Assembly: GCA_964247055.1 (NCBI GenBank)
Contig: OZ176050.1
Coordinates: forward strand, 11,532,001 to 11,596,000
DNA length: 64,000 nucleotides
Source of the DNA: Paragordius varius
Taxonomy: Eukaryota; Animalia; Nematomorpha
Reading direction: 5' to 3'
The position numbers and the translations under genes were made by a program. Every line of letters starts with the position of its first letter. The first letter of the stretch is position 1. The notes below the pieces were generated by a model. It saw nothing but the letters and a program-made list of their open reading frames with translations. It was not told the DNA's origin and searched no databases. Shown here piece after piece: positions 49,225 to 61,990 of this stretch.

Positions 49225-50791
49225 ATGGGTTCTATCAACTATTCGTCCAAATTATTTTTCGGTATTTTCATTCTTACCCTTTTTTAAATTAGATTGGGTT
49301 TATACTCAATACAATTATTATAAGTACAATAAATTATATTTTTATTTTTATGGTGTAGTTCTTTGCGGCATAATTTTTGCCAACGCAAATCCTGGGCTCC
49401 CAGTCAGAAAAAGTGATGGCTCTGACACCAATAATTTGTATCGCAGAAATCATTACAGATCACTCTACAATAGTAACAAAAATGAGGATCAATTGATTTC
49501 GGCCAATGCCGCACTCAAAGGTAGGGATGATGAAATATCCTTAGGATCTAACCGGAATGTCAGGCGTGACAGTTTACAAGATAGTAGTAGCAAATCATCC
49601 AGTCATAAAAGAAACAAAGATTCCAGCCTTCAACATCACCGTAAGAAACCAACCAAATCTGATAAAATGATTATGGCAGATAAGAGCGGAGGGCCCCCTA
49701 GCGATTTATACGGACCGGATCCAAACCGTGGTGGCGGCGGCTTACCGCCTCAACATCATATAGATCCGAGTTATGGGCCTATCCCTAGCGGCCTCTTAAA
49801 CAGTTATAACCGACAACAGGCGCCTGAGGATGTCATTCCCAGTGATGTGCTCATGGTCCCCGGATCTATTTGTCAAACTCATGACATTACAGACGGCATT
49901 TTGAGTGACCCCTCAGATTGTTCCAGGTACTTTGTTTGCGCGTTCGGCCAAGAATTTTCGAAGTCATGTCCGTTAGGCTTGTTGTGGAACCAAAAAACGC
50001 ATTCTTGTGATTGGCCCGAAAATGTAACGTGTTCCAACAAAAACCGTAAAATAACTTAAATATATTTGTCCTGCATACTTTTCAATTTGTTATTTGGCTA
50101 AATATTTATGTTTGCATAGATATGATGGAGAATATGGTTGACTTAAGATGTGGTCGCGACAAAATTAGCTGTGCCTCTGGAAACCAATGTATATTCCTTG
50201 ATCAATTATGTGACAAAAAAGTCGATTGCCTAGATACATCCGATGAAATTACTTGCGGTAAAAAAAGTTCTATTTATTTTAACTAATAAGTAAAATGTCT
50301 GATTACAAAAGTTCCTCAATCATTCCTGCTTGTTATGATGTAATGGCCCAAATCTCGTCGGTGTAGCTCTTATTTGTATAGTAAAGGTAACAGTTACAAT
50401 ACACCATCGATCTTTAAAATGTATAAATGGTTTTTAACAACATGATCAATTTTCTTATAATCCAATTTTTACCCTTACTTACAAGAAAAGCGCATCCAAT
50501 ACGTTTTTAAATGAGAGTTTTTGTGGTGGTATGTCGACATAATTTATGCTATTCAACAAATTTAAAGGTTTATTTAATAAATTTTTAGATCCCTACAAGG
50601 TTGGTGTGTTGCCAGGGAAAGTAGTTTCAGTCGATGGGGGTACAATTATACCCTTTTGCGGTTCAGGCCATGCTTTATGCACGAGCCGAACTCAATGCGT
50701 AATAATTTCACAGCTTTGTGATGGTGTCGAAAATTGTCCAGATGGATCAGACGAAGCGGAAGAAATGTGCCTTAAATCACCAAGAAAATAA
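49225..50791 (+). CDS. Secreted protein: low-complexity N-region, CBM14 (peritrophin-A) chitin-binding domain and two LDLa repeats
   Basis: Exons 49225-49261, 49359-50045, 50120-50257 and 50589-50791 join in frame. Signal-like MGSINYSSKLFFVLCGIIFANA; CBM14 DPSDCSRYFVC...CPLGLLWNQKTHSCDWPENVTC; LDLa CGRDKISCASGNQC...CDKKVDCLDTSDEITC and CGSGHALC...CDGVENCPDGSDEAEEMC; stop TAA. Confidence 0.85.
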
Positions 50792-51078
50792 AATATATTT
50801 GCCAATATTTGAGACGAAATCATTTATTACATACATATTTTATTTATTATTTAGTAGATGTCTATTTCAAACAAAATGTCACATAATGACTTTTATTTAT
50901 CAATGCACCACTGATACAGAAGTGTCTTAAATCACCAAGAAAATAAAATTGGCCAACATTTAACACACACATTTATTATATAGTTTATTTATTTAATATC
51001 ATTTTGCATATTATTGCATCATATACTATCTCAAACTAAAATGTTTTTATGATTAATTAATGCACTGCTTAATAATAA

Positions 51079-51856
51079 TTAACTGAAATATTTTTCAAAT
51101 AAAGATTTTAATTTTGAATCTTTGACTGGTTGTTCATGGTACTCAGATTGTGATGAAGGAAATAAAATTTTAGATTTATAGGATAAATCAGGGTCGTCTT
51201 TTGGGTTAGTTCCAACCAAAGTGTTAAACAATTTCGTAAAAAAGCTTTCACGTGGATGCTGCGGTTCATGTAAAGCAATATCATCTTTAACATGACTTAA
51301 TTCATTTTTTATCATTGATTCGATCGGCCTTTGATGCATACTCGAAAAATCTGTATGGTCTTCCGTAACAACAGTGCCATCTGGTTTACGGATAGTTACA
51401 ATTTCTTTTATTTTATCCCCACTGGTTTCAATTACTTTAATTCGCTCATTCCCTAAATGGTCTCGTAATACACTTTTTGAAAAAGAAAACTAAATGGTAA
51501 AAATAAAAATAGTTACTGTGTGAATCTTGGGTGTATCATTATCTTGAAATACAGAATCGGTTTTATTATACTAAAATAAATTGGAATGGTATTACTTCGG
51601 GTTTAAGCATTTGATCTCTTAACGAACTTGGATTATTGGAATTAGAAAATGAAGAAAGACCTATATTTATATATGCTCAAACTTTGTTCTGGTGCTATAT
51701 CAATTTCATTGCTTAGTTGGTCAAATATTTTAAATATATCATTTGTAATTATTTTAATATCATTTCCAAACCAATCGGCTTGTCCAAAGTTTCTATAATT
51801 GATTAATATATAAATTGTTAAAACTTGTCAAAATCTTTTTCAAACCAATCAAACAT
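51079..51856 (-). CDS. HAX1: HAX1-like (HCLS1-associated protein X-1), 223 aa
   Basis: Exons 51856-51825, 51792-51683, 51660-51596, 51570-51517 and 51489-51079 total 672 nt of open frame after removing GT-AG introns of 32, 22, 25 and 27 nt. Motif SLRDQMLKP resembles HAX1 LRDSMLKYP; FSFSKSV and TIRKPDG resemble the HAX1 C-terminal region. Confidence 0.72.
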
Positions 51857-51864
51857 TTTAACAG

Positions 51865-52173
51865 ATGGAGTCTATCTCGCAAGAGTTTATTAGTGCAAAA
51901 AATCCTTTAATAGCTCGGAATTTGCAATTATCATCGGGATTAAAATTTGGCGTTGACTTTTTGGGTTACTTAGGTTTTTTGTTTTTAATATAAGGGGATC
52001 CAAAACACTTTCACTCGCTTTTTATGTTTTTCCTGGAAAAAGAAAAGAATTTACCAGTTTTAGAGCTTATAACTCTTATTCGATTGGCAACTATAGTTAA
52101 AAAAATATTTGTATATGTATATAAGGAAAATGATGAATTTACTTATTTAACATTTAATTATATTGAACTTTAA
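51865..52173 (+). CDS. TSEN34: tRNA-splicing endonuclease catalytic subunit, TSEN34/Sen34-like, catalytic domain only (95 aa as modelled)
   Basis: Exons 51865-51973 and 51995-52173 (288 nt) with a 21-nt intron that contains an in-frame TAA. Gives SGLKFGVDFLGYLGDPKHFHS...RLATIVKK, with the putative Tyr/His/Lys triad present. The 5' end may have additional upstream exons. Confidence 0.85.
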
Positions 52174-52177
52174 TAAA
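52169..52177. terminator. Overlapping candidate poly(A) signals for the convergent TSEN34 and REEP5 genes
   Basis: Plus-strand AATAAA at 52172-52177 overlaps the TSEN34 stop, and minus-strand ATTAAA lies at 52169-52174. Weak evidence in such AT-rich DNA. Confidence 0.35.
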
Positions 52178-52180
52178 TAT

Positions 52181-54436
52181 TCATTCATATAATGTTTTTA
52201 TTGGATCTGCCCTTATTTCACTCATTCTGCATGTAATGGCATTCTTGTATTGGTTCTTGTTAATAACCTTGTATTGGTGCTTTGAGGAAAAAAGAGGTAT
52301 TTGTTTTATAACATATTTGTATAATATGTTTGCTCCATTGTTTTCCATTGGCAAGAGGCACCATACAACAACGCTAATCTAGAATTAAGTTAATTTTAAG
52401 TTAATCGTTTAATTGGGTTATATTTGGCAATGTAAAAGATTATAACTGAGCAATTAAGGATTGGTGCTTAAGTACGTAAATTTTGGCATTGTTTTTATAA
52501 AACATGGAAGAAATTTAACAATTAGCCTTGTGCTGATAGCGATGGTCATAGGCTGGGCCCTTTGTTGGGTACTTGGTTATTTTTTTTTTCAAATTTCCTC
52601 ACCAAAAAATCAAGGGCCAAAACAATAATTATGCATAGCTATGTGACTTTGCAGATATTAATACTCCAAACAAATACATCAAAAAATTAATAAGATATTC
52701 AGTGCCATAAAAAGCACTTTTAGGGCCGTGGATTGAGTATCACTACTTTAAGGGCTATTTGTCTCTTTTAATTAAAACTATTTTTAAATGGAGCCAAATA
52801 ATTTCTGCTTGGTTATAAGATTCAGGCGACTTAAAAAGTTATATCTTACACAACATGTTGTTTGAAATATCAATATTTTTTAGATTTTTTAATATCAAAA
52901 ATAACAAAAAATTACTAAATAAAATTCCGGATTCTATTAACAATCCTTTATATAGAATAGTATCGGGAAAACAAAAAAGTAAATCCTACTGCGAAATTTT
53001 ATATTAGTATTTTAGCATTAGAAAAAAAAGTTTTATTGCAATATTATATTTTTGTTTATCAATATCATTTTTTATTTGAATCCATAACGCTTTACGTATT
53101 TCCTTAAATAGGCATAACATTTTTTAAAAATAATATTTAGATGACATTAATATTTACTTTACCCATAGTTTGTTTCACACGTAAAACCCATATCAAAACA
53201 TGTTAAACATCTCAATGATTGTGGTTGACTAACATTTTATTTAAACTATTTTTAATATAATGTTACCAAATTATTTATACCTTTAAGAGATGATAGACTG
53301 GGAACCAATCTAAAAAATTGGAACATAGATATTCACAAAAGCTAAAAGTTGCGAAAACTATCCAATAAGCCAACCATTGTTTTGATTTGTCAATACTTTC
53401 GCTTTCTATGGAACATATCCTATTCATGCATGCAAATATATATTTTAGCTAATAGTAAGATCGTTAAATATGGATTTCTCTCTTAATTATATTTGCTAAT
53501 TGGCCTATTTATAGCGATTTGTTTACAAACCAATATGATAGATATATCATTATTTTTGTAATATTAAATTAAATAAAACGAAATCGATTCGTGTTTTAAA
53601 GAATACTTCAATAAAATCTAAATAAGCTATCGTAAAAAGAATTTAACATTTTAATCCATATTAAATATTATAAAGCAAATGCATTTTTTAATTTGACTTA
53701 CGAACAATAAACGGGATAGAAAAAGCCGATGAAAGCACTAATGATTGGCGCAGCATGTCCCAACACAATTTGATACACAATGAGAATTGAAATGCAACCT
53801 AAAATAATTATTTTGTTAAAATATTAATTGTATTCAAATTATCATTTATGCTACTGTTATTCGTCCAAATAATATTAGAATTAATTTAAATTATGTGTTA
53901 ATATTTTATTTTATTCATGTATTAATAAAAATTTTATACACTAACCATTTAATTGGTTTAAATGAACAGATCATGTAGTATGTGGAGCCAACACATTGGC
54001 TTGAAAAAAAATCAAGTTGTCTTGAAACCAAATTAAATAAAGATATGATATTTAAAAGAAAAAAATATAAAAAATCTCTTCTCGATTAGGATGATGTTAC
54101 TGCATCCGAAACATTCTAATATTAGTAGTTTAAATGTTGTGGGAATACAGTTTTGGCTTTTTATATCATTGTGTTTTTTAAAAGGAACTCCCACTGTCTT
54201 TTTTTGACGGAATTAATATGAAATATATATTGCCTTAATTTAATTTAACTATTTATGAATATAATTGGAAACAATAAAATAATTTATAGGTAAAAATTTA
54301 TTATTAATGTATTTTTGGCTTAAAATCAGGATCGATTGAATAAAAAAGTTTATGGCTATATTGCAATATACTTTCTTAAATATTGACAAGACATACCTAG
54401 AAACAGAATATTATAATTTAAATTGAAGAGATCCAT
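52181..54436 (-). CDS. REEP5: Receptor expression-enhancing protein 5/6 (TB2/DP1/HVA22, Yop1 family)
   Basis: Exons 54436-54397 (MDLFNLNYNILFLG, tentative first exon), 53798-53702 (...FIGFFYPVYCS), 53419-53281 (IES...QWLAYWIVFATFSFCE...WFPVYHLLK) and 52378-52181 (VWCLLPMENNGANILYKYVI...KHQ) give 474 nt in frame. Confidence 0.88.
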
Positions 54437-54718
54437 AAAAATAAAGAAATAAATTAATTTAAGAAAGATAAATCATTAAATATGAATATGATTGTTACAT
54501 TAAGTTGTAAACAGTAGTGTGTATAATCATGAGTGCAACTTTATTAAATTAAAAAAAACCTAAGTTTATACCCATAGTTAAAAAGATTTATTTTTATAAT
54601 TACCACTCCAATACCGTTTACAATAGTTTTCTACGACAGAGCCATTTCAAATATGAATTGTGAGAAGTCTCTATGATATTGGGCCAAATTTAAAAATGTG
54701 CATATTATTACTCTTTAA

Positions 54719-56368
54719 CACTTCGATTCAAATTGGGGTATCTAAATACCCCAGACCTTTTTCAAATTAGTATTCTTGAAAAACTACCCAATAGAATGGC
54801 CCTAATTTAAATTTATGCTTCTATCTTTATAAAAATTATATAATTAAACCAAAATAACTTAATGAAATTTAGTTTTGAAAAAAGATTCTCATCTCGAATT
54901 GGTTGGCGCCAGAATTATTTTTGAATTTTTTTTACCAGAATACATATTATTGTTAAAGATTGTACAATCCCACCTCCTGTAAACATATCATTTAAAGTAT
55001 TTTCCGTTACGAAGCATTTATTTTGTTGTTATGGAAGATTTTTCAGATAATTTTGATAGTAGCAGAGATTATAATGTGGATGACTCTTCATCTTCGAAGT
55101 CAAGTATAAAATTATTTTATTTAGATTATAATATAATGGAAAATTTAGCAATCCAGTATGATTGGTTTTATCCCCGGGCTCAAATCAAATTTTAGGACCC
55201 ACTTACAACATTTAATTCTATCATAACCTATGACGTAAAAATTTGATTATGAAAATAGGAAAACTATTATCTATATACAAATTTAGGTATCTGGATTGCT
55301 ATGGGCTTGCGCAAATACATGGTCCCTTAAATAATCTTTTTCGGCTTCAGAACGGTTAGCAATTATATTAATGTGCCAAAAAGGTATATATACTTATATA
55401 TTCTACAAGGTCCTATTTGCGTCGAAGATCTGTTTACAAAAAATCTAATATTTTGCCAAGCATGTCAACATATATCCTCTTAAATTGTTTGCACAAATTA
55501 TGAAAATAATCTAAATAAATTATTTGGAAATAAGATTTTAGTATACTATATTTATCGATCATGGATCGAATTTCACACCTATTAAACCAGATAAATTTTG
55601 AAGGGTTTAAAAATGAAAAATTAGCATTATTTTTTAAACAAACACAAAAAAATTATCTAATAATTGGCACTAAAATAGAGCCCGGGCCGCGGTAAGTGTC
55701 ACTGATCTAATAATAAACGATTTACTTCTAGAAGGCAAAAAGCAAGTTTTGATTTATTTTGATCGTAGAATAAATAAAAATACATGATTAGATATAAAGC
55801 ATCAAATATAAGATTATTCGGTAGAACTCTGGGAGATCAAGATTTATATTAATTTTTATGACCTGTTGACAAAACCATCTTGGTGTATATGATTCTGTTT
55901 CTTTCATGATATTACTATTTTATAGTAAACCTAAATGTAAAATTTACTTCAGAAAGTACGTGGAATGATTTCAATTTAAGCAAGTCTCACAAAATTTATA
56001 AGACTAATATTATAGTTGCTTCTCGAGATTCAATAACTGTCCAATATCTTACATAAGGTTATTCATTATGTCTTTATAAGCCTATAAATTAATAAAACTT
56101 ACTTTTAAAGATTTTTTCTTTCTGTTATGGCGATGCTAAACATAAATAATAGATATTTGTAAATCGATTGTCTGAAGTATGTAGAGACTTGAACTAAAAT
56201 GTAAATTTCCTGTTGTATTTAGTTAATTATGCAATAATAAATATAAAATAAGCGATAGAACTTAAAAACAATAGGTGTTTAGTAAATTATTTGCTTTAAA
56301 AAGGCCTGGGGTATCCAACTACCCCAATTTGAATCGAAGGACTAAAATGAATGTGTTGAATCCAAGTG
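54719..56368 (+). mobile_element. Decayed piggyBac-like element
   Basis: TTAA|CACTT ... AAGTG|TTAA ends with inverted subterminal TGGGGTA..TACCCCA hairpins. The interior has an acidic EDFSDNFDSSRD stretch, DPLTTFNSIIT and GIWIAMGLRK fragments loosely resembling a piggyBac transposase, with many stops. Confidence 0.55.
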
Positions 56369-56633: not shown

Positions 56634-57836
56634 CAGGGGTGGTCAACATAAATGACTTCGCGGGCCACATTTTAAACTAAAAACTTTCGGCGGGCCGCAT
56701 TAAAAATATACATCGGCAAAAAGCCATAATACAAACCCCGACCGGCAGAACTAATAAATTTTCAATACCGAAAGGTGTTAGACAGGGATGTTGCCTCTTA
56801 CCATACTTGTTTAACATTTGTATAGAAATGATCATAAAAGTAGATGAAGGTACTGAAAGCTTAAGGATAGGGGGAGAATGATTAACAATCTAAGGGTCGC
56901 AAATCATACGACACTGATCGCAGATAATGTAGTTAAAATAATATAATAAGGTTAGTAAGAGAAGAAAGTAAAAGATATGGATTGTACCTCAATCCTAAGA
57001 AAACCAAAGTTATGAGTTTATTAAAAAACGAACCTAATATAAGCATAGACAACACCCCAGTTGAAATAAAAATTTCTTAGTCTCTCTAATTAACGGCTCC
57101 TCCACGCCAGATATTAAACACCCCATAGCATTAGAAAAGTTAGCTTTGAACGTTGACTAAATTATAGAAAAGTAAAGATATCACTATCAAAACTAAAGTA
57201 AGAGTTATGAAATGCATGGTTTTTCCGCTAGCGGCTTATGCTGCATAATGGAAATTAAAACTTTATAATAAATTAAGGATTTCAACTTAATAATGTGGTG
57301 TTGGAGGAGAATGTTGAATGTAAAGTGGTCGTCGGTCTGACAAAGTTAAAAATGAATCGATGAGAAAAAAATTAAATAATGAGAGTAATTAAAATATAAT
57401 AAATGGGAAGTATACGTATATAAGGCACATTTTAAGAAGGACATATCTTGATAAAGATCTAATTTTTAGGTTGAAGGGTAAATAAAAAAGGAAAACGGAT
57501 ATAAGATGGCGGGACATTATAAAGAATGATCTGGTAGAACTATAGGCGAATTAAAATAGAATGGGAAAGAAACAAGAGTCATTTTAATTTTCATGCGTCG
57601 AACCCGACCTAAATAAATACCTAACTACCCTATTATTAAATATTTAATTAGATTTAAAACATAAAACTATATAATGGAAAAACAGTATAACATTTTCTAG
57701 TTCGTTGCCAATTATATAGACTTATTCTGGGAATTTGTTTAAATATCAATCTTCCTGAGACTTTATGAGCCTACTTTTGCAATTTACGGATTTCCAAATT
57801 TTTCGCGGGCCACACATAAGCCGCGTTTTGGACATC
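56634..57836. mobile_element. hAT-type MITE remnant interrupted by a LINE fragment
   Basis: Left end CAGGGGTGGTCAAC with GCGGGCCACA/GCGGGCCGCA motifs. Similar motifs at 57800-57830. Right TIR degraded and no TSD confirmed. Confidence 0.5.
56760..57560 (+). mobile_element. RTE-clade (BovB-like) LINE reverse transcriptase 3' fragment, decayed
   Basis: Fragments read KGVRQGCCLLPYLFNI, IGGRMINNLRVANHTTLIAD, EESKRYGLYLNPKKTKVM, KTKVRVMKCMVF and WCWRRMLNVKW, with frameshifts. Confidence 0.85.
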
Positions 57837-59714: not shown

Positions 59715-61990
59715 TCACTTTTTTGTCCTAGCTTACATATGGGGGTAATTTTATATTTCAGAATTTATTAATAAACTATAGTTTTGAAAGTTATTTATTA
59801 AAATATCAGCCATTGTTTAAATAAATTATATAAAAAGCTTATTTTACAGTTTTGTGCCTAAATCTTCAGCTTCAAACAAAATATTTCAACAAACAGCTGA
59901 TTTTAAAATCAAAATATATTTCGTTTTTGCTTGCAAAATGTACCCTAAAAACTGTTTAAAGTTAATTATTTATATTTCCTAATGAAAATATACATTTGTT
60001 TGTCTGTTGCATTAGTGGTTTGAAAAAATTCATACAAAAAATGGCCGCAAAAAAGTTTGGGATGAATATCTTAATCCATATTTTTTATAAAAAAAATTGG
60101 ATATAGAGTCGAGGCTAAGTATATTAAAAATCGGCTAAATACTTTAAATACTTTTTAAGATATTTAAATTAATCGCTCAAGGATTTTTTTACCTATGCAA
60201 GTATTGCAATTTATGTTTTTTGTCTGTATTGGAAATTGTAGTGATGATAATATTTTCATAGACTTATTTATTTTTTTGCATATGCAAATAAGATATCTAT
60301 TAGCTATTTACATATATAGCTTTATAATCATGCAGTGACATCATGGATTGTCCTTAATTTATATTTGTTTTTTTGATACATGTAATATACCTTCAAAAAA
60401 AATTCAATATAGAACCCGATTTTATAATAAATGTATTATCATCTTGTATTATACTAGCGTTGTGGTCGAACCCAACATAACATATATAAAATGACCTCTA
60501 AAGATAATGGAGTGTTAATCGTGTTTTGGAGCTATCTAGGGACTTTAAAAGTTTAAGAGGTGCACAAATTTATTTTTTATCGAGTACAAGAATAAAAATT
60601 GATAATAAAATTTTACCCACAGGCAAAACAGCAGTTTATTGACTATAAATTCCGGGATTCCAAATTGTAATCTCATAATACTATAATAAAGTGTTAAAAC
60701 TAATAAACTTTAAAATAAATTATTATAAAATTTTGCCACATCAAGTGAAAATTTAAACCCATAATTAGATACTAGAAGTTAGCAACCGTTTGACTCATAA
60801 TCAAAAAGCAAATTGTTTATGATGATATTTTAATTTTGATAATCTAAAGTAAACTCCATAATATTAAAGATATTTTATGGTGAACTTACAAGTGTTTCAG
60901 CTGTTTAAAGCATGGCCATAAATTATGTACAAGATCTACCACCAGAAGGTGGTTATAAAATATTTGATGTAGCGAGAAAAAAGTGTGCCTCTAAATACAA
61001 TGGTTTTGCTATAACTATAATGATAGGTTGGTTCTTTTTATCAGTCGCAATATTTCATAGTTTTCTAGCTCTTCATTTTATGAATAGAGAACAAGATTAC
61101 AAACAGTATTTGTTGCTAATATTAGATTTTTATATACGGATTTGAATGATGCGAAAATTGCATTAATGCCATTGTATACTGCAGAAATGGACAGAGTGTA
61201 TGTTAATTTTAATAATTAAGGTTCTTACGACATTTAAAGAATAAGCGCGAAAATGAGCGCATATTAATGAAGGATGTGCCTAATTGGAAAGTTGGGCATG
61301 TATTTTCCGATCCTATATTTAAAACATTACCCGAGGATTACTACTTTTCGCCTTCACACGAAGAATTTTATTCGGCAGCCGCCGGTAAATATGCTATGGA
61401 TAAATTTATTGATTTAATTATGTAATTAATAAATTGTTTGCGTTGTTATCATATAAATATCATATTTTTTAAATATAACCTAAGATAACAGAACCTGATG
61501 AGTTGTTTTTTGACTAGATTGAGCTTTTGTATTCCGTTGGTGGAACAACTTTTTAAGATTTTAAATTATATATTATTACTGTTTGGATATTTCTCGACTT
61601 TACTTTAAAAATCTTCAGTTAATTGGCGCAAAAAGTTTATGATCTCTTAAAATTGCTAAGGGTATTTTATGCTTTTAATTTCAATATAGAGGCGTATAAT
61701 TTGTAAAAGAATAAATATATTGGCACGATTTGGTTAACTTTTTTTATTTCACTATTTTGTCCTAGTTTACATATTGGCGTTGTTTCATATCCCAACAATT
61801 TAATAAACTACAGTTTGGAAAGTTATTTAAAATTTATTTATCAAACATTGTGTTCATGAATTAGATAAAAAAGCTTGTATTTTTTACACTCTTGTGACTT
61901 CAAGAGTCTAAAATTGGACAAAACACGATCGAAACAAACAGCAGTTATTTAAATCAATATATATCAAGTTTTTGCTGGTAAGTTGTCTAT
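59715..61990 (+). repeat. Pair of ~250-bp dispersed direct repeats (~59715-59960 and ~61745-61990) flanking NDUFA13
   Basis: Shared ttttgtcctag(c/t)ttacatat, taataaacta(t/c)agttt(t/g)gaaagttattta, aaaaagctt and aacaaacagc. Family not assigned. Confidence 0.6.
60912..61425 (+). CDS. NDUFA13: NADH dehydrogenase (ubiquinone) 1 alpha subcomplex subunit 13 (GRIM-19), 148 aa
   Basis: Exons 60912-61002, 61027-61105, 61126-61197 and 61221-61425 (447 nt) separated by introns of 24, 20 and 23 nt. Motifs QDLPPEGGY, IALMPLYTAEMDRVFLR, LMKDVPNWKVG and PIFKTLPED. Confidence 0.93.

Follow-up and report, generated by a model that had tools for sequence, protein, structure and literature searches.

Overlap between neighbouring genes is a familiar condition: divergent pairs that overlap at their 5′ ends, convergent pairs that do so at their 3′ ends, and transcripts with a start or an end inside a neighbouring gene are all well known. 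The locus described here, from the hairworm Paragordius varius (Nematomorpha), is a real case of such overlapping neighbours, ordinary in kind, and an unusually tight instance of a known layout in a genome that is not compact. It lies in a window of 64,000 nt (assembly GCA_964247055.1, contig OZ176050.1, positions 11,532,001 to 11,596,000 of the forward strand; all coordinates below are those of the window) and consists of a HAX1-like gene on the minus strand, a TSEN34-type endonuclease gene on the plus strand and a REEP5-like gene on the minus strand. The first two resemble the bidirectional head-to-head pairs of mammals and other animals, defined by divergent transcription starts less than 1 kb apart, which also have a tiny common control region and involve housekeeping-type partners; here, however, it is the start codons, and not just the transcription starts, that lie 8 bp apart. 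The second and third resemble tail-to-tail natural antisense pairs, which are convergent and have each poly(A) signal in or next to the end of the other gene, but here the stop codons are 7 bp apart, the signals overlap within the 9-mer TTTAATAAA, and the overlap falls on coding sequence rather than on untranslated regions (UTRs). Near-zero spacers go with mRNAs that start or end inside neighbours in compacted genomes (microsporidia, nucleomorphs, Oikopleura), from which transcripts of this kind are best known, whereas the squeeze here is local, with REEP5 introns of up to 902 nt and 6 kb of repeats and long interspersed nuclear element (LINE) fragments beyond that gene. Finally, the spliced leader 2 (SL2) operons of nematodes offer co-directional genes about 300 bp apart and an acceptor-like sequence abutting a start codon, as here, but in the hairworm locus an antisense coding gene occupies the would-be intercistronic space and no spliced leader was seen. 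The poly(A) signals that REEP5 has of its own are a trait of known operons too; none of the other operon signals is present.

The layout of the three genes and of the signals around them is as follows.

51079 to 51856, minus strand: HAX1-like coding sequence, 223 amino acids, an intact spliced open reading frame (ORF) with GT-AG micro-introns
51857 to 51864: spacer TTTAACAG, 8 bp, separating the HAX1 and TSEN34 start codons, read from the sequence
51865 to 51973, plus strand: TSEN34-type exon 1, codons 1 to 36 and the first base of codon 37 (PF01974)
51974 to 51994, plus strand: TSEN34 intron of 21 nt, GT-AG, with an in-frame stop, inside the Y-x-G-D-P catalytic motif
51995 to 52173, plus strand: TSEN34-type exon 2 (PF01974), ending in a double stop, TAATAA (52171 to 52176)
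52169 to 52177: TTTAATAAA, overlapping back-to-back poly(A) signals, from a hexamer reading of both strands
52174 to 52180: spacer TAAATAT, 7 bp, separating the TSEN34 and REEP5 stop codons, read from the sequence
52181 to 54436, minus strand: REEP5-like (TB2/DP1/HVA22) coding sequence, 193 amino acids, an intact spliced ORF (PF03134)
50972 to 50997, minus strand: poly(A) signal cluster of the HAX1-like gene, 82 to 107 nt after its stop
51807 to 51815, plus strand: TATATAAAT, a speculative TATA box for TSEN34, in HAX1 intron 1 and 50 to 58 nt before the TSEN34 ATG

The HAX1 start codon reads cat at 51854 to 51856 and the TSEN34 ATG begins at 51865; at the other end the TSEN34 stop (TAA, 52171 to 52173) is directly followed by a second TAA, and the REEP5-like frame closes with a minus-strand TGA that reads tca at 52181 to 52183. 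From the HAX1 start to the REEP5 stop there are 324 bp, 309 of which are taken up by the TSEN34 coding sequence, and the spliced reading frames of all three genes are intact (223, 95 and 193 codons for the HAX1-like, TSEN34 and REEP5-like products, respectively). An earlier, sequence-only reading of this DNA had placed the trio at these positions, and its coordinates proved exact to the base when both spacers were read again on the sequence; its statement that TSEN34 nearly fills the gap between two co-directional minus-strand genes is likewise borne out. Our preferred interpretation is that these are three separate protein-coding genes in a small islet, with coding sequences that nearly touch; taken jointly, with everything that it implies, we regard its chances as about even. 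Each gene would most likely be its own transcription unit, with mRNAs overlapping those of its neighbours, and overlap among the mRNAs of the trio is almost certain on the strength of the coordinates. We infer the transcription of the trio, the positions at which its transcripts start and end, and the absence of leader exons.

The layout is not an artefact of assembly, because independent DNA contigs span both junctions: the HAX1/TSEN34 junction is covered by record 22 of run X4 (51703 to 52067), and the TSEN34/REEP5 junction by record 23 of run X4 (52163 to 52352) and record 12 of run X3 (52098 to 52394). Between them these contigs represent a different sample from the same study as well as a second study, and they show identical spacer lengths. 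The X4 contigs, which carry the same species label, differ from the window by about 3 to 7% over 50000 to 54700, with small indels; this exceeds the usual variation within a species and may reflect a cryptic species or a divergent haplotype. The TSEN34 frame is also not a product of chance, since long open stretches are uncommon here (at least 36 open codons follow 8.4% of random positions in the window, and at least 59 follow 2.5%) and since both exons match one domain in order.

That domain is PF01974 (tRNA_int_endo), to which exon 1 aligns over positions 11 to 31 of 85 (14.7 bits, E 0.034) and exon 2 over positions 35 to 85 of 85 (19.2 bits, E 0.0013). The exons were scored singly and each falls below the curated cut-off of 27 bits, but the two matches are collinear and adjacent, and excision of the 21-nt intron restores their collinearity, position 31 then being followed by position 35. 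A cryo-electron microscopy study of the human TSEN complex names seven functional residues of TSEN34, K239, Y247, H255, R279, R285, K286 and W306 (PMC10539383), all of which are kept or conservatively replaced in the 95-residue hairworm product:

K27, exon 1 (human K239): phosphate contact
Y35, exon 1 (human Y247): catalytic triad
H43, exon 2 (human H255): catalytic triad
R66, exon 2 (human R279): Arg/aromatic tweezer
K72, exon 2 (human R285): conservative replacement
K73, exon 2 (human K286): catalytic triad
Y92, exon 2 (human W306): aromatic partner in the tweezer, near the C-terminus

The triad Y35-H43-K73 has spacings of 8 and 30 residues, where 8 and about 31 are expected, and R66 stands 7 residues before K73, as R279 does before K286, with Y92 in the place of W306. 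The C-terminal strand was aligned with the human TSEN34 sequence, which agrees with the numbering in PMC10539383. Because the tweezer is an Arg/aromatic pair, where TSEN2 has Arg/Arg, we assign the gene to TSEN34 rather than to TSEN2. Only about 4 residues of the ORF precede the catalytic domain. An in-frame TAA (51859 to 51861) stands 3 nt upstream of the ATG, and the N-terminal domain that in human TSEN34 contacts tRNA (PMC10539383) is missing. When ten open pieces of the plus strand between 50706 and 51795 were scanned with Pfam, none gave a signal of that domain, although short or diverged exons could escape such a scan. A gene fission could conceivably explain this, with a catalytic-only subunit whose N-terminal partner domain is encoded at another place or has been lost. 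Exon 2, searched exhaustively with HMMER against 1.84 billion representatives, returned one spurious multi-stretch match and no relatives, which suggests that public protein sets lack the gene; phmmer searches of both exons singly against the PDB gave no matches.

The names that the sequence-only reading gave to the genes can be upheld to different degrees: REEP5 by a Pfam match above threshold, TSEN34 by the collinear sub-threshold matches and the residues just described, and HAX1 only by motifs, an intact spliced ORF and an excess of synonymous differences. For REEP5, the stop-free stretch 53278 to 53448, which contains exon 4, matches PF03134 (TB2/DP1/HVA22) with 47.4 bits (E 1.9e-12; curated cut-off 27.2 bits), which places the gene in this family, and the last exon continues the profile, weakly but collinearly, at positions 54 to 76 of 77. 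Its exons, at 54436 to 54397, 54075 to 53968, 53798 to 53702, 53419 to 53281 and 52378 to 52181 on the minus strand, make up an intact spliced ORF and are separated by four introns of 321, 169, 282 and 902 nt; the two 5′ exons are the best among several frame-compatible models. The stop at 52181 to 52183, on which the tail-to-tail spacing depends, is secure unless the unconserved tail undergoes further splicing. Human REEP5 has about 189 residues, a length similar to the one found here.

The HAX1-like gene has exons at 51856 to 51825, 51792 to 51683, 51660 to 51596, 51570 to 51517 and 51489 to 51079 on the minus strand, forming a spliced ORF with one stop, and four GT-AG micro-introns of 32, 22, 25 and 27 nt. 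Its name rests on four collinear motifs that resemble those of HAX1 proteins: an N-terminal MxFDxF, LRDxMLK, a core containing KPDG and a C-terminal LF..F tail. A Pfam scan gave no match for this gene, and we know of no Pfam model for HAX1; its last exon found no match in a word-indexed search restricted to proteins of 74 to 234 amino acids, and a comparison of that exon with the ESM Atlas yielded nothing usable. Since the extreme N-terminus resembles that of HAX1 proteins, translation probably does begin at the ATG at 51856. Compared with the X4 individual, the exons carry 12 differences, nine synonymous and three non-synonymous, with the remaining differences and all the indels located in the introns, a substitution pattern that, judged from these alignments, is that of a gene under purifying selection.

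At the tail-to-tail junction the signals are as tightly packed as the stop codons. On the plus strand AATAAA (52172 to 52177) lies over the TSEN34 stop and is the sole plus-strand A[AT]TAAA hexamer between 52100 and 52300. On the minus strand ATTAAA (52174 to 52169) lies 7 nt past the REEP5 stop and overlaps the plus-strand signal in TTTAATAAA, and a second minus-strand ATTAAA follows at 52158 to 52153. Cleavage usually takes place 10 to 30 nt downstream of a poly(A) signal, and from these positions each mRNA would end in the last codons of the other gene. We propose that TSEN34 and REEP5 each use the poly(A) signal inside this common 9-mer, so that each 3′ UTR would extend about 15 to 50 nt into the last codons of the partner on the opposite strand. 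Where space is free, the signals look ordinary: the poly(A) cluster of HAX1, between its stop and that of a convergent plus-strand chitin-binding/LDLa gene (50789 to 50791) 287 bp away, implies a 3′ UTR of the usual kind, which would confine short or overlapping UTRs to the squeezed junctions.

At the head-to-head end, a 5′ UTR of more than 8 nt must run antisense to a coding exon of the partner, unless splicing supplies the leader. HAX1 and TSEN34 may be transcribed divergently from start sites within the first exon or a micro-intron of the partner; in effect, a bidirectional promoter would then lie within coding sequence, with each short 5′ UTR antisense to the first codons of the partner. 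The TSEN34 ATG is, however, directly preceded by a sequence that looks like a good 3′ splice site, cattttaacag|ATG, of which the spacer TTTAACAG forms the end. An AG stands immediately before 3.8% of the ATGs in the window, and before 0.9% when a pyrimidine-rich stretch is also required. Three options thus arise at this end, namely embedded divergent starts, a leader exon joined in cis, and a trans-spliced leader, and with middling confidence we favour the first, because no upstream exon was found in the plus-strand pieces from 50706 to 51795 and because a stop in the same frame stands before the ATG, as is expected of a true start. The earlier claim that no room is left, so that every UTR must overlap antisense coding sequence, holds at the 3′ junction, where the poly(A) signal positions agree with it; at the 5′ junction it may fail, because the splice-site sequence, which that reading had missed, would allow a spliced leader or leader exon and with it a distant promoter. 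As for promoter elements, TATA-like heptamers occur 11.6 times per kb, counting both strands, and at that frequency TATATAAAT is weak evidence for a TATA box. The 10-mer CAAACCAATC is found twice on the plus strand (51767 to 51776 and 51841 to 51850), 98 and 24 nt before the TSEN34 ATG; both copies include a CCAAT box of the NF-Y type, and on the minus strand they encode the D-W-F motif of HAX1 exons 1 and 2. The two copies could be a coincidence of coding or promoter elements written in coding sequence.

Several observations weigh against three separate genes in this form. Among the sequencing runs searched, the locus was found only in DNA-like runs, none of them recorded as RNA, and the runs under the same species label that we guess to be RNA contain none of the stretch. 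The contigs aligned show no splice joints in the trio and cover its introns. The acceptor-like ttttaacag before the TSEN34 ATG hints at splicing to an upstream leader or to a leader supplied in trans, and a TSEN34 of 95 residues that lacks the N-terminal domain is unusual, so the gene may be incomplete as modelled. Moreover, the positions of TATA-like and poly(A)-like hexamers are weak evidence, because DNA of 27% G+C is rich in both. The window has 26 to 27% G+C, compared with 26.9% in a published gordiid genome, and poly(A)-like hexamers occur in it about 3 times per kb per strand.

If the acceptor-like sequence is a real 3′ splice site (51864/51865), the genes would be interleaved rather than merely adjacent: the TSEN34 transcript would start at an upstream leader exon, either non-coding or encoding the missing N-domain, and the intron would stretch across the antisense HAX1 gene, wholly or in part, while HAX1 itself may have a 5′ UTR intron spanning TSEN34 (a possible acceptor, gagatag|ACTCC, lies 18 nt before its ATG). 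Promoters would then sit at conventional distances. Animal genomes contain many nested and interleaved antisense genes, the rarity of such a context before an ATG in this window speaks for a functional acceptor, and so does a product that lacks the tRNA-contacting domain of its human counterpart. The upstream DNA, however, speaks against such an exon: the plus-strand open pieces from 50706 to 51795 give no match to the endonuclease N-domain and none of them looks coding, farther upstream lies the 3′ end of the chitin-binding/LDLa gene, and the sole candidate donor for a short intron (a GT at 51827) leads into a frame without an ATG that is closed by a stop at 51800 to 51802. An exon that begins exactly with an ATG after an in-frame stop has the look of a true start, and we consider interleaving unlikely, though it deserves to be taken seriously. 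The missing domain could also mean that the TSEN34-like ORF is a truncated catalytic-domain fragment lying between two genes, a non-functional remnant or a frame that is not expressed, in which case the 324 bp would serve as the promoter and 5′ UTR of HAX1 and the 3′ UTR of REEP5. The small size of the product, its Pfam matches below the curated threshold, the fruitless exhaustive search with exon 2 and the DNA-like nature of the runs that hold the locus would all fit decay of this kind, but a remnant would hardly be expected to keep both exons open over 36 and 59 codons, stretches uncommon in this window, together with a 21-nt intron that retains GT-AG, seven functional residues kept or conservatively replaced and a poly(A) signal exactly at the stop. 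We judge this quite improbable.

The sequence-only reading had also proposed that REEP5 and HAX1 form a polycistronic unit, and a nematode-style version of that idea, resolved by spliced-leader trans-splicing with TSEN34 itself trans-spliced at the acceptor abutting its ATG, would need no promoters in the spacers. Hairworms are the sister phylum of nematodes, and a spacing of 324 bp would fit the range of intercistronic distances in nematodes; REEP5 and HAX1 run in the same direction, an acceptor sequence stands directly before the TSEN34 ATG, and the housekeeping gene NDUFA13, elsewhere in the window, has tttcag 11 nt before its own ATG. What speaks for the unit itself, however, is orientation and distance only. 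What would be the intercistronic region is taken up by an antisense protein gene, an arrangement unlike that of known operons, REEP5 has its own poly(A) signals right past its stop, and the roughly 70 nt before the REEP5 ATG contain no AG. The locus thus departs from operons of the nematode type, with an antisense gene in the 324-bp gap and no spliced-leader RNA gene in the window, where Rfam and tRNA scans found nothing. In the literature searched, no paper connects spliced leaders with Nematomorpha, and two hairworm genome papers make no mention of introns, operons or intergenic distances. The polycistron is, in our estimation, very unlikely indeed. The broader notion that hairworms use spliced-leader trans-splicing, perhaps with operon-like units, and that the TSEN34 ATG marks a trans-splice acceptor, or else that the TSEN34 gene has undergone fission, is a long shot of much the same order; under trans-splicing, near-zero spacers may be tolerated because promoters and 5′ UTRs come from elsewhere. 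Three separate genes, with divergent starts embedded in coding sequence at one end and interlocked poly(A) signals at the other, remain the interpretation that we prefer.

Should RNA confirm this arrangement, promoter, UTR and coding functions would be carried by the same bases of both strands in an otherwise roomy genome, and the locus would be useful for asking how the choice of start site and antisense overlap are tolerated. Polycistronic transcription or trans-splicing would matter most, if true, and the acceptor-before-ATG pattern offers a concrete site at which to ask whether hairworms share trans-splicing with nematodes. The small genes of the trio have a more practical implication: small genes with micro-introns are probably missing from hairworm gene sets; neither HAX1 nor TSEN34 matched anything in the protein collections searched. 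The published hairworm annotation relied on STAR and BRAKER, and tools of this type may miss introns of 21 to 32 nt and so contribute to low BUSCO scores. Within the single islet of 3.4 kb, intron size splits by gene, HAX1 and TSEN34 having only introns of 21 to 32 nt and REEP5 only introns of 169 to 902 nt.

The squeeze is local and the genome is not compact, because the flanks hold long introns and transposon debris. The 6 kb beyond the REEP5 start consist of repeats and a LINE-type reverse-transcriptase fragment, which lies on the plus strand at 56681 to 57077, carries the motif FSIPKGVRQGCCLLPYLFNICIE and sits among the repeat debris between REEP5 and NDUFA13. A very high-copy repeat (54714 to 54865) lies some 280 bp ahead of the REEP5 start codon. 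Its summed contig depth is about 434,000 in X4, where nearby sequence has about 100, and 1.6 million in X1, where nearby sequence has about 600 to 1000; numerous alternative joints and loose ends give the repeat the look of a short element, dispersed or in tandem. Inside the 902-nt intron of REEP5, the interval 52431 to 52617 has zero depth in X4 and X3 and normal depth in X1, and the adjacent bin (52618 to 52804) shows an approximately 5-fold excess; over 52431 to 52804 the pattern suggests a repeat insertion polymorphic among the samples.

At the other flank, the stop codon of the chitin-binding/LDLa gene lies within its own AATAAA (50787 to 50792). A 28-nt direct repeat of 96% identity (50767 to 50794 and 50922 to 50949) duplicates the last codons of that gene, its stop and the AATAAA 155 bp downstream, and could either give that gene an alternative 3′ end or be a small duplication in tandem. 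The start of NDUFA13 (60880 to 60914) is preceded by gtgtttcag|ctgtttaaagcATG, in which the acceptor-like tttcag stands 11 nt upstream of the ATG, and the string CTGTTTAAA at this start resembles CTGTTAAA before the HAX1 ATG. The motif CTGTT(T)AAA before an ATG, suggested by HAX1 and NDUFA13, was set aside: it occurs four times in the window, twice at real genes, which is too few to mean anything.

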